A DNA stretch of 64,000 bases from Bugula neritina (GCA_964035545.1 OZ037767.1:7636581-7700580); one strand, 5' to 3'; positions 1,180 to 62,767 are shown, counted from the first letter of the stretch. Numbers and translations: made by a program. The notes: a model not told the origin generated them from the sequence alone.

Positions 1180-1315
1180 CTTTTTATTACCACTATGACA
1201 ACAACAGCTGCTACAATAAAAGCCACCACTCCACCTATAGCTCCGCCAATGACTCCAGGCTTGGGTGGTTTCAAAGTAGTTGATGGGGAAATAGTCACAG
1301 ATAATGGCTCAGGAG
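1180..1315 (-). CDS. Copy A transmembrane exon
   Basis: tttag acceptor; Pro/Ser/Thr stalk; hydrophobic segment of ~24 aa; KR; gtaaat donor. Confidence 0.8.
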
Positions 1316-60300: not shown

Positions 60301-62767
60301 AGAGGTATTTTTAATATTTCGAAAGGACAACTCCCCTGCTACTCCTCTATTATCGTCATACGTACAAAAACCCTCGTTTATCAAGCTTGCTAGTAATTGC
60401 CTTCTAGGCTACTAACATGCCCTATGAACGATGGAAGCAGCTTAGTAATTAGAGCTCACAGCTATCATGCTGAGATAGCCAGCAATCAGACAGCAGGATA
60501 GCTATAGTTAGGTTGTACATATTGTCTGCAGTTATGTAAGTGTTTTTCTGATGTATAGTTTTACTCCTGTATATTGGAATTATTTAAAGCATATAATTAA
60601 CTTTAACTTGGCATAGTGGCATTGGTTTAAATAACTTGACAATTAGTGAATGCACAGTTTCACAACAATACTGCTTTGTTATATTATTGCGCTGTTGAAT
60701 GTGGATTATTATGTGATTTCAAATTTCACCAGCCTAATTAGGCATGATAAAAGAATAAATCCCATTCCAATTGGTAAAAATTGAATAGTTTCTATACGTC
60801 CTACATAGAGAGCTTTAAGACTAGAGCCCGCAAAATATAAAACAATATAAAATGGTAATCTGCATAAATTTCCACCTAGTAATCTGCATGAGTTGCTATA
60901 TACTTGTTCAACTGTGAATAATGCCAACGCATACCATTGCTTTGTTGTATTTCTACAAACATTTGAGCAGTGCTTTTATTATTTACTAGTTTCTAGAAAT
61001 AATTTTTTTTTACAAAATTAACTGTACGGCATGGTGATATTTCTCACAATTGGAAATATTTTGAGAAATTAGAATTATATTTCTATGTTTACCAATAAAA
61101 CTAATTGATACAATATTTTATATTTTGAAACATCCATTTGTATACAAATTGATTCTCTGTGTTAGATTACTGCCAGCAGTTATAAAATTGTTCACAAAGC
61201 TACTAAGCTTACCTACATTGGTTCAATTGCTCAACACAATGTTCACATTGTGGTAAACTTTCTAGTTACTGACACATCTCATTACATGAATTCTATACCA
61301 AGAAGAAGAAATAATCTGATAAACTGCACAACTTACAGTCCTGTTCATACACTTCTACTTCAGCCAATGAAAGAGGTTCTGTGTGAATACTGTATACAGC
61401 CACATGTCTAACAAGAACATCAGCTTCTAATATAACATTTGCTTCAGCTCCATACTGTTTATCTCTGTATGATCTGATCATCCATTCACTGTCCTTGGCT
61501 AGAGTCGGCTCCCCTGGGGTATCTTCCGGAGATGTGAGGATGTAAATCTTCTGAAGCCTGTGACCTAAAGTTATAAAAATGATCTCATAGCACTTGTGTA
61601 TAACATGCTTAAAGGGTAAACAAAGCTTCATTTGGCAAAATTGAAATTGTTGCAACACACAACTTGTTACCTTAACAGATTAAACTAAAATTTGCTTTAA
61701 TGAAAATCACACAGTAGTAACATATTATACTTTCTTGATATACTTATATACATACACTGGTAGCAGTTATTATTCTGTCTGTTCCATATATTGATCCTGC
61801 TGACATGAAACTTCTTCTCCAAATCTACCATCCACCATTTCTCAACAGGCACGCGTAAAGTGTGAGTGAAATCATCAATTTTTCCATTAACCGCATTTTT
61901 TGCCTCATACTGTCCATACATGTTTGATTGTTGACATGGTTTGTTTAGAGCTAAATTATCTACAAATAGATTCTACTAGAATACTAATTCTGATCAGAAA
62001 CTGTTTCATATAATGCACCAATATTTTATAGAATGTCTGAAGAGACAATCCTCTTATATAAAAACTTATATCTGAAGGTGCAACAAGCTAATTTTATTCT
62101 GCTGTGGTAAGTAGTATATAAGGAAGCAAACTAGGCACATTAATTAATGCTACTTGTATTACTAGAATAACAGTGAGATTTACTAAAAAAATTAGATGCG
62201 CAGCAGTTTAGCGTCAACCTGCAGTAGCTTCTATGACTTTTTAATGAAGAAATTGCTTGAAACAATCTATAAAATATTTTAATATAGTATATATAGGGTT
62301 AAAGGTTGACATAGTTAAGACTCGTAGAATTTGTACTCAATTTGAGAGAATGCTTAGTGATGCTACCAGCAATACACATTAATTAATAAAATATGTTTTG
62401 CACAAAACAATTGCGTTTTCTGTCTCAAACATAGCTTTTTACTTAATTCATTAAAAAAAAAATTCAAGAACGCATACTTGTTTATATACTGCAAGTTATA
62501 AAATATTTGAAAAAGTTAGTAGCAACTCAATTAGTATTTTGTATGTACTGACACTGGTGCAACCACTCATCAGTATTTAACAAACTACAGCCTAACTGAC
62601 TCGTTTATTACACCTAAATAACTACACATAATTTTATAATGAAGCACTCAATTATAAAAAGAAATGCCTAAAACACTGTACCATGCATTACCTTGAGCAG
62701 TGCTGACTGAAAGACATACTGAGTAAATAACAATCAGCAACCAGAATCTTTCTACACCAACCTTCAT
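36075..62767 (-). CDS. Receptor gene copy B (complete, ~1294 aa): signal peptide, 3x F-type lectin, 5x FN3, RPTP-like domain with furin site, Sushi/CCP, TM, Tyr-motif cytoplasmic tail
   Basis: Exons (GT-AG, phase-compatible, total 3885 nt): 62692-62767, 61756-61959, 61337-61564, 51741-51965, 48150-48377, 46501-46728, 45357-45593, 44634-44781, 44300-44487, 43899-43993, 42634-42838, 41445-41548, 41183-41351, 40732-40826, 40394-40592, 40092-40198, 39648-39840, 38645-38738, 37498-37783, 37143-37194, 36687-36893, 36075-36391 (stop). Confidence 0.88.
36687..36893 (-). CDS. Copy B Sushi/CCP domain exon (phase 1-1)
   Basis: CSNPP..YECEKG..C..WSGEPLIC: four Cys plus Trp/Pro CCP pattern; 207-nt symmetric exon. 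Confidence 0.85.
37143..44781 (-). CDS. Copy B exons 8-20: five FN3 repeats plus RPTP-type membrane-proximal domain
   Basis: Paralogous to 1412-8601; retains RSKR and YITAE..FAVGDG.SYNGYKN. Confidence 0.82.
39189..39407 (+). mobile_element. tRNA-derived SINE, copy B only
   Basis: A-box-like TGGTCTAGGGGTTAG, degenerate B-box GGTTAGAG; flanked by 11-bp TSD TTATAGTGTTT; empty site in copy A at ~3470. Confidence 0.65.
42312..42598. mobile_element. Solo LTR (TGTTGA..TCAACA), 5-bp TSD CATAT
   Basis: Absent at the paralogous site in copy A (~6130); same family as 47292-47551 in opposite orientation. Confidence 0.8.
43221..43325. repeat. (CA)n/(CACGCA)n microsatellite within a local intronic tandem duplication (~42950-43700)
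   Basis: Visible directly; the flanking block (ttacagtgg..gtcaaac..tatactg..cagtaaa) occurs twice. Confidence 0.9.
45357..46728 (-). CDS. Copy B exons 6-7: F-type lectin domain 3
   Basis: ORFs 46463..46795 and 45193..45576; splice sites match copy A. Confidence 0.85.
47292..47551. mobile_element. Solo LTR (TGTTGA..TCAACA), 5-bp TSD GATCT
   Basis: Empty site ggatct at ~11651 in copy A. Confidence 0.8.
48150..51965 (-). CDS. Copy B exons 4-5: F-type lectin domain 2
   Basis: ORFs 51613..51990 and 48070..48402; splice sites match copy A. Confidence 0.85.
49726..50644. mobile_element. Shorter member of the 32151-33469 DNA transposon family
   Basis: Same TIRs, TA flanks, colinear internal sequence with a deletion. 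Confidence 0.85.
52710..52930 (+). mobile_element. LINE endonuclease fragment, paralogue of 20530-20760, truncated
   Basis: LICVTESWLT..FRVDR; colinear with copy A up to ggcat. Confidence 0.65.
53091..53903 (-). CDS. Retroelement-borne C2H2 zinc-finger + coiled-coil ORF (probably a frameshifted continuation of 53561..54796)
   Basis: CHQCQKKFSSARRLRVHALQH is a canonical C2H2 finger; second finger CRC..LRHQRISRC; C-terminal heptads [29 protein letters not shown]; homologues in G1 and G2. Confidence 0.7.
   Translation of the reverse strand: MCSSSISGPDPKPVELQLAAGEEQGILHGDHPAGEEDDSPKLALPRALVARQYWIFGATNLKIGQACGEPGNCICHQCQKKFSSARRLRVHALQHYINVFCRCGEFSYQRDYVLRHQRISRCNTGYTVAVDQATFPEVRDLVLPHVADPHKQAALALGFPACRPVQEKVGESVATSQPAATHSFRIVLALVESGARADFSDLGPRPSPTSEKQRRRTSHGATDRPRRQTAAQLDEEVRHLHRRLRRYEEELGQLRRRMSRLERSQAGDRQ
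57570..57716. repeat. Multi-hairpin palindromic array with terminal inverted repeat, inside the G4 LTR
   Basis: cctttgttgccga..tcggcacttc ... gaagtgccgatctcggcaaccaagg, then (CA)n. Confidence 0.8.
61337..61959 (-). CDS. Copy B exons 2-3: F-type lectin domain 1
   Basis: [44 protein letters not shown]. Confidence 0.88.

Follow-up and report, generated by a model that had tools for sequence, protein, structure and literature searches.

Two tandem receptor genes and their common ectodomain

The window analysed here, a stretch of 64,000 nucleotides (nt) from Bugula neritina (GCA_964035545.1 OZ037767.1:7636581-7700580), is AT-rich (~31% GC) with GC-rich blocks, and carries on its minus strand two receptor genes, gene A and gene B, which begin with the same ectodomain and end in wholly different membrane and cytoplasmic modules. 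The gene models were built from stop-free segments conserved between the two copies and with a related locus (L001), every junction was then read, and the domain, profile and structure-library searches were run exon by exon. Gene B extends from an ATG at 62767 to a TAA at 36075 (minus strand) and comprises 22 exons, 3885 nt and 1294 amino acids (aa). Gene A runs from an ATG at 31676 down to 1180 on the same strand, with 21 visible exons, and then exits the window; the last of these exons (1315-1180) stops at a phase-2 GT donor. Twenty exons correspond one to one between the genes, all with AG/GT borders, in the same phases and of equal length, save for exon 10 (89 nt in A, 95 nt in B), and the encoded proteins are 81.2% identical over 1103 aligned codons. 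The preliminary description of this locus had claimed two open, colinear genes, and this was borne out, as neither gene contains a stop or a frameshift and 20 exons are common to both; its end coordinates and exon count also agreed exactly with the rebuilt models.

Comparison of the window with itself revealed a tandem duplication, in which copy A (~1866-34189) is colinear with copy B (~37487-64000) at 72-88% nucleotide identity, introns included. Exon 1 of each gene encodes the initiating ATG and a signal peptide (31601-31676 in A, with a phase-1 donor; 62692-62767 in B, MKVGVERFWLLIVIYSVCLSVSTAQ). A signal peptide, an FN3-containing ectodomain and a single transmembrane (TM) segment are present in both, and both predicted proteins share one ectodomain design and a type I orientation in the membrane.

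Behind the signal peptide lie three F-type lectin domain (FTLD) units, each spread over two exons that meet at the same phase-1 site. In gene A, FTLD1 occupies 30247-30868 (exons 2 and 3, 30665-30868 and 30247-30474), FTLD2 12217-19700 (exons 4 and 5, 19476-19700 and 12217-12444) and FTLD3 9248-10646 (exons 6 and 7, 10419-10646 and 9248-9484). The counterparts in gene B, likewise on the minus strand, lie at 61337-61959 (61756-61959 and 61337-61564), 48150-51965 (51741-51965 and 48150-48377) and 45357-46728 (46501-46728 and 45357-45593), the last being paralogous to exons 6 and 7 of A. The significant matches of the N-terminal half exons (2, 4 and 6) in the PDB were F-type lectins only (E 1.6e-6 to 6.7e-5), namely lectinolysin (3LE0/4GWI), FBP32 (3CQO), eel agglutinin (1K12) and SpX-1 (2J1R), and these exons also matched Pfam F5_F8_type_C and F5_F8_type_C_2. 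Specifically, FTLD1, modelled from its exons in both genes, is anchored by the match of B exon 2 to FBP32 (3CQO, E 1.6e-6); exon 4 of A matches lectinolysin (3LE0, E 1e-5) and both Pfam families, FTLD2 of B being placed by its exon model and Pfam; and FTLD3 of A matches 4GWI, 3LE0, 3CQO and 1K12, with 31.8 bits to F5_F8_type_C. The C-terminal half exons of the three units are repeats of each other.

Residues of a putative sugar-binding site were compared as well. We take the pattern His ... Arg-x-Asp ... Arg/Lys to correspond to His52, Arg79 and Arg86 of eel agglutinin. FTLD1 has the His within THT, then NRQ followed by Asp in A and Asn in B, and finally HRL after a three-residue insertion (in gene A, THT at 30768-30776 and NRQD at 30681-30692). 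In FTLD2 the THT His stands at the canonical spacing and is accompanied by NRQ and YRL, with no Asp; FTLD3, which has no His, reads ARDD in A, the first Arg being replaced by Gln in B. In the aligned columns only FTLD1 and FTLD2 retain both the His and the NR-loop Arg, with the Arg-Leu following after small indels, and these two units may bind glycans, possibly fucose.

The next ten exons (8-17) encode five FN3-sized modules of 91-111 aa each, two exons apiece, with phase-1 introns at their borders. In gene A they span 3515-8601 (exons 8-12 at 8454-8601, 8121-8308, 7041-7129, 6162-6366 and 5268-5371; exons 13-17 at 5008-5176, 4560-4654, 4239-4437, 3952-4058 and 3515-3707), and are conserved in the loci L001 and L010; in gene B they span 39648-44781 (exons 8-12 at 44634-44781, 44300-44487, 43899-43993, 42634-42838 and 41445-41548; exons 13-17 at 41183-41351, 40732-40826, 40394-40592, 40092-40198 and 39648-39840). 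The five FN3 domains described earlier hold as to number and size; as to identity, in scans of the B copies the Pfam fn3 threshold was passed by unit 3 only (29.2 bits), unit 4 being weak (19.4 bits), unit 1 faint, unit 2 PKD/Ig-like and unit 5 without any Pfam match, and half-domain profile comparisons of the five modules were not significant as proof of FN3.

The membrane-proximal domain, encoded by exons 18-20 (1412-3108 in A: 3015-3108, 1877-2162 and 1412-1463; 37143-38738 in B: 38645-38738, 37498-37783 and 37143-37194), is of the Fn3_PTPRU type (37.8 bits in A, with a weak PTP_tm match, and 31.6 bits in B). Exon 19 aligns with the fourth FN3 of the receptor protein tyrosine phosphatase (RPTP) RPTPmu (8A16, 2V5Y; E 4.9e-5), including a basic loop. 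In this loop a furin-type RSKR motif (2120-2131 in A; 37741-37752 in B) aligns with the RRTKK loop of RPTPmu and is invariant across 7 family members. Together with the lectin structures, the Fn3_PTPRU and RPTPmu matches uphold the earlier proposal of three FTLDs on an RPTP-like scaffold.

Divergent ends, relatives and selective constraint

After exon 20, which ends in phase 1, genes A and B are wholly different, just as had been described from the sequence beforehand: a Sushi domain, TM segment, Tyr-motif tail and stop in B, and a Ser/Thr/Pro-rich stalk, GxxxG TM segment and onward donor in A. Exon 21 of gene A (1180-1315, 136 nt) encodes the stalk (1257-1313), a GxxxG-rich TM segment (1185-1256) with no charged residue and then Lys-Arg, up to the phase-2 GT donor; a further 1179 nt downstream the gene runs out of the window. 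By homology with A-type loci in which the TM exon precedes protein tyrosine phosphatase (PTP) exons, gene A would be a receptor PTP. Exon 21 of gene B (36687-36893, 207 nt, phase 1-1), in turn, is a whole Sushi/CCP domain in a single exon (pattern C..C..C..W..C; PF00084, 25.7 bits at a cut-off of 20.7) with no counterpart in A. It is followed by exon 22 (36075-36391), which encodes a TM segment (36306-36386) and a 76-aa tail up to the TAA. Gene B thus ends 76 residues past its TM segment and is not an RPTP, because it has no PTP domain.

The tail of B contains the Tyr motifs YEVP (36219-36230), YINT (36168-36179), VNYEVL (36129-36146) and YAAV (36084-36095). YxN motifs are of the Grb2 type and YxxP motifs of the Crk/Nck type, and VNYEVL fits the consensus of the immunoreceptor tyrosine-based inhibitory motif (ITIM). 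The tail does not form the corresponding activation motif (ITAM), since YEVL is followed after 11 residues by YAAV and the second motif ends in Val; this spacing is retained in the related locus L002 and missing from the paralogue L004. Neither an A-type TM exon nor a PTP relic was found in the 3' region of B, and no relic of the Sushi or tail exons in the visible last 1.2 kb of A. The donor of exon 20 is G|GT TAG in A (1409-1411) as well as in B (37140-37142), so that a retained intron 20 would stop the protein at once and yield a secreted ectodomain.

The only close relatives found were B. neritina contigs, from the draft GCA_010799875.2 and from JGI samples 3300002729 and 3300003318, to which the window is 80-91% identical at the nucleotide level in exons and ~75-79% in aligned non-coding sequence. 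No identical protein is on record. A whole-library search with exon 19 returned 22 proteins, four of them close and all four B. neritina fragments; P0006 and P0008 from the same search were dismissed as spurious bacterial matches. The tail of gene B found one cluster only (P0023/L002), the tail of L004 found no match, scans of metagenome_contigs with protein patterns and a 39-nt degenerate DNA pattern gave no further family loci, and the databases held no B-specific protein besides genomic open reading frame (ORF) fragments. Judging from these matches, the receptor family appears so far to be known from bugulid bryozoan sequence only.

Both kinds of 3' end recur among these relatives. The A-type loci L001, L008 and L009 share exon 20 followed by a stalk/TM exon; L001 and L008 continue into PF00102 exons, with SAGVGRTG in L001, whose PTP exon is nearest to R4/R2A receptor PTPs. 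The B-type loci L002/L003 are colinear with 35335-37805 of the window at 75-79% nucleotide identity, non-coding sequence included, and the match spans intron 19, the Sushi exon, intron 21, the tail exon (exon 22 of B being 82% identical to P0023/L002) and ~700 nt of 3' flank. At L004/L005, a second B-type locus, exon 20 is 52 nt long and has good splice sites, and it is accompanied by a Sushi exon and by a much-diverged tail that retains QPxYxN..FE.EE (YxN) and a YEV motif. The Sushi exon is conserved in L002, L003 and L004 at 78-81% aa identity (78% in L004), and the order exon 19 - Sushi - tail is maintained at two B. neritina loci. The claim that a similar ectodomain is coupled to different signalling modules is hence supported by 81% identity, by unrelated 3' exons and by the occurrence of both types in B. 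neritina, and, as both tail types are found in the window and in the contigs, the split between A and B types predates the divergence of those genomes.

The family as a whole has up to ten members: at 90% identity, exon 19 forms ten clusters in the B. neritina data, L001 and L002 included, and some of these may be alleles. In L010 (2278-2661) exon 9 joins exon 14 directly, skipping exons 10-13 and leaving two FN3-sized modules fewer, so the number of modules is variable within the family. RPTPs with FN3 domains only are also arranged in tandem in B. neritina. Between two such FN3-type RPTP genes on contig VXIV02002512.1 we observed a small ORF (L011 617-975, equivalent to L012 ~9870-10231) with a TM segment and a Tyr-rich tail (YEEV, YAEV, YESM, YEKV and YQNM), which may be another docking-type protein beside phosphatases.

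Selective constraint is evident on both genes. Over the 1103 codons, A and B differ by a dS (synonymous divergence per site) of 0.20 and a dN (non-synonymous) of 0.10, giving a dN/dS of 0.50 (synonymous vs non-synonymous, p = 4e-9). With L001 as outgroup, unique amino-acid changes number 58 in A and 60 in B, so the ectodomain of B is not relaxed. The dN/dS was below 1 in every region tested, with no sign of diversifying selection. Between B and L002 the tail has a dN/dS of 0.26 overall, falling to 0.03 in the last 40 codons (8 synonymous changes and 1 non-synonymous, p = 1.4e-5), which supports very strong purifying selection on the Tyr-motif segment. Exon 19 (1877-2162 vs 37498-37783) is the sole block in which non-synonymous change between A and B is not lower than synonymous (dN 0.118, dS 0.099, ratio ~1.2, with too few sites to call).

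The two copies also have a mosaic history. Per site, the synonymous divergence that separates A from B amounts to 0.11 in exons 1-5 and 0.21 in exons 6-20 (p = 0.001), and overall to 0.18, vs 0.27 between B and L002 (p = 0.03). In exons 14-17 the A-B dS is 0.18 vs 0.47-0.96 to L001 or L010, in exons 7-9 all pairs are alike in divergence, and exon 19 has a star-like pattern in the tables of pairwise identity and dS. Alignability of A and B ends 11 nt past exon 19; from there on the intron of A matches A-type loci and that of B matches L002. This pattern fits gene conversion or recombination keeping the neighbouring ectodomains alike, a reading that is suggestive and not conclusive, as the B. 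neritina loci need not be strict orthologues. As a further observation, homology between the upstream flanks of A and B (33469-34189 vs 63252-64000) extends to the window edge, so the repeat unit is longer than what is visible and a further copy may lie past base 64000.

Comparison with known receptors and proposed function

With respect to known systems, the closest scaffold is that of the R2 RPTPs (R2B: PTPRM/K/T/U; R2A: LAR/PTPRD/S), with which these genes have in common the type I topology, the FN3 array, the single TM segment and, next to the membrane, an Fn3_PTPRU-type FN3 whose equivalent loop likewise bears a basic convertase site; the A-type relatives also share the classical PTP domain with its (C)SAGVGRTG signature. 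Three F-type lectin domains take the place of the MAM-Ig or Ig1-3 head of R2 RPTPs, and gene B differs from them further in having no phosphatase at all. By the features tested, A-type genes would belong with the R2-like receptor PTPs, bearing a new lectin head. Products displaying an RPTP ectodomain without the catalytic domain are also known, such as phosphacan or short PTPRZ and truncated PTPRO; however, these are splice or cleavage forms of one gene, whereas B is a separate gene with a Sushi domain, its own TM segment and a Tyr tail.

Likeness to the F-type lectins (1K12, 3CQO, 3LE0, 2J1R) covers the N-terminal halves of all three units and, in FTLD1 and FTLD2, the His and the Arg of NR(G)D. 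Bindin of the oyster is a multi-FTLD recognition protein, and the tandem FTLDs described here resemble both FBP32 and bindin. Unlike the known F-type lectins, which are soluble lectins or toxin modules, the present FTLDs head a transmembrane receptor, and they differ by indels in the loops after NR, by mostly replaced Asp residues, by an FTLD3 without the His and by diverged C-terminal halves.

With paired immune receptors (KIR, LILR, SIRP alpha/beta, Siglec-5/14, PILR) the locus shares adjacent paralogues with similar ectodomains and unlike signalling ends, one motif in B that fits the ITIM consensus as a pattern (VNYEVL), and signs that the ligand-binding end of A and B was kept more alike than the rest. 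Differences are, nevertheless, substantial: the ectodomain described here is neither Ig nor C-type lectin, gene A has no charged TM segment or ITAM adaptor logic and by homology would have its own phosphatase, and A and B are 81% identical, not above 90%. Membership of the classical activating/inhibitory paired receptors, to which the preliminary description had likened the genes, therefore fails, given the uncharged TM segment, the lack of an adaptor arm and the phosphatase predicted for A. The literature searched contained no description of the present family, whether as an FTLD-RPTP, as an FTLD protein with an ITIM or as bryozoan allorecognition genes, and none of any recognition or immune receptor family for Bryozoa.

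Taken together, we think it reasonably probable that the locus encodes two adjacent, lineage-specific receptors, A being a lectin-headed RPTP and B its non-catalytic, Tyr-tailed twin, which read one ligand into two outputs. In this scenario, A and B would bind a common, probably fucosylated, ligand, and a convertase would probably cut both at RSKR, as happens in R2-type receptor PTPs such as LAR and RPTPmu, leaving an outer subunit attached non-covalently to the membrane subunit. The tail of B would be phosphorylated on Tyr and recruit SH2 proteins, and A would deliver phosphatase activity to the same contact and could reverse what B starts. The pair would in this way convert one ligand into two opposed or self-limiting outputs, and one ligand with two outputs, A reversing B, seems the most likely arrangement. 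In the design of B, a phase-compatible Sushi exon and a terminal TM/tail exon take the place of the stalk, the TM segment and the phosphatase of the A type.

Several observations weigh against this interpretation. On the lectin side, the C-terminal half exons had no match to solved structures, FTLD3 lacks the His of the sugar triad in both genes, and the Asp of RxD is retained only in FTLD1 and FTLD3 of A. On the signalling side, the phosphatase of gene A itself lies outside the window, and the ITIM/ITAM-like part of the tail is not retained in L004. The junction of exon 20 with the Sushi exon in B is predicted from phase, splice signals and colinearity only. In L002 (452-3182) there is no recognisable exon 20, the homologous stretch being degenerate, with a stop and 2.3 kb inserted, so the link between ectodomain and Sushi domain is not confirmed at that locus; in L001, exon 8 (2878-3015) has an in-frame stop or indel. 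These defects of L002 and L001 could be draft errors or marks of dead copies. Finally, the ectodomains of A and B are 81% identical, and not near-identical.

Among the alternatives, the one that survives best, though we regard it as rather less probable than two outputs from one ligand, is a cell-adhesion or developmental RPTP family, in which A is an R2-like adhesion phosphatase with a lectin in place of the MAM/Ig head and B, itself non-catalytic, acts on A as a co-receptor or competitor, tuning it through a shared ligand or through heterodimerisation, like truncated or secreted RPTP isoforms. The match of the membrane-proximal domain and furin loop to RPTPmu and PTPdelta, the proximity of the L001 PTP exon to R4/R2A receptor PTPs, the other FN3-only RPTPs in tandem and a dN/dS below 1 in every region, free of any sign of diversifying selection, all speak for such a family; yet it leaves unexplained both the up to ten mosaic members with a variable number of modules and the extreme conservation of the Tyr motifs of B.

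A bolder version of the preferred two-output reading is more doubtful still: a pairing invented by bryozoans, in which fucose-binding heads are kept alike by conversion and a phosphatase 'off' arm stands opposite the ITIM/YxN tail, serving colony self/non-self, allosperm or symbiont recognition. Roles in immunity, allorecognition, or the recognition of allosperm or symbionts are speculation.

That B is instead a decaying or chimeric duplicate, either a pseudogene or a model that has taken in the Sushi, TM and tail exons of another gene lying downstream, is very improbable. The absence of a recognisable exon 20 in L002 and of B-specific proteins other than genomic ORF fragments would fit such decay, but all 22 of the 22 exons (3885 nt) are open, with AG/GT borders and matching phases at a dS of 0.20, the ectodomain of B evolves no faster than that of A, and the stretch from exon 20 to the Sushi exon offers no further signal peptide or start. 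Moreover, the order exon 19 - Sushi - tail recurs in two B. neritina loci with a tail dN/dS of 0.03. With a dN/dS of 0.50 against A and equal rates in the two genes, we rejected a pseudogene as the principal explanation of B. That the two copies are haplotypes of one gene, left uncollapsed by the assembly and set in tandem, can be dismissed almost outright: their adjacency and colinearity would agree with such an artefact, whereas 72-88% nucleotide identity, a dS of 0.20, unlike 3' ends, a long terminal repeat (LTR) element in one copy only (10% LTR divergence) and both tail types as separate loci in independent B. neritina assemblies all contradict it.

Bryozoa are a colonial, spermcasting phylum, and Bugula species also have vertically transmitted symbionts; for such animals this locus presents a concrete and testable candidate recognition-receptor family, with a lectin head on an RPTP scaffold. 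The tail of B is under stronger constraint than any other part measured in the analysis. The locus also offers a clean case of exon shuffling, in which a phosphatase gives way to a Sushi exon of phase 1-1 and a new TM/tail exon, an exchange that would make an SH2-docking receptor out of an enzyme-linked one. Should A and B share a ligand, paired-receptor logic would have arisen here independently, one arm having the phosphatase fused straight to it.

Mobile elements and flanking sequence

Beyond the two genes, no tRNA gene or Rfam family was found in the window, and mobile elements lie in some of the introns. Intron 4 of gene A contains a GC-rich retroelement on the plus strand (12454-17922), flanked by LTRs (12454-12766 and 17544-17922) that are ~90% alike and bearing an internal inverted duplication (15354-16116 vs 16273-17035); it is absent from intron 4 of B and was therefore inserted after the duplication. 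Intron 3 of A holds a Ty3/gypsy-type remnant (22000-27500, minus strand) with an integrase ORF at 24585-25358 (rve and Integrase_H2C2). Remnants of the same type lie at the matching place in intron 3 of B (~52700-58000), with 77-91% identity to those of A; being common to both copies, they are older than the duplication. The intron 3 remnants have 50-57% GC within a locus of 31% GC.

The interval between the genes (31677-36074, minus strand) comprises the 3' flank of B and the 5' flank of A; the 3' flank of B is conserved with L002 down to ~35335 and has AATAAA at 35412, 35146 and 34611. Situated ~470 bp upstream of the A ATG is a 1.3-kb insertion (32148-33468), a copy of a repeat in intron 4 of B (49737-50649). 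The upstream region of B does not have this insertion, which could affect the promoter of A. In addition, a dispersed repeat of ~220 bp, resembling a short interspersed nuclear element (SINE) or a miniature inverted-repeat transposable element (MITE), occurs in the window at 39194-39414 and 49350-49580, and the same repeat is present in L001 at 4373-4582, 6258-6455, 14574-14798 and 23257-23472.

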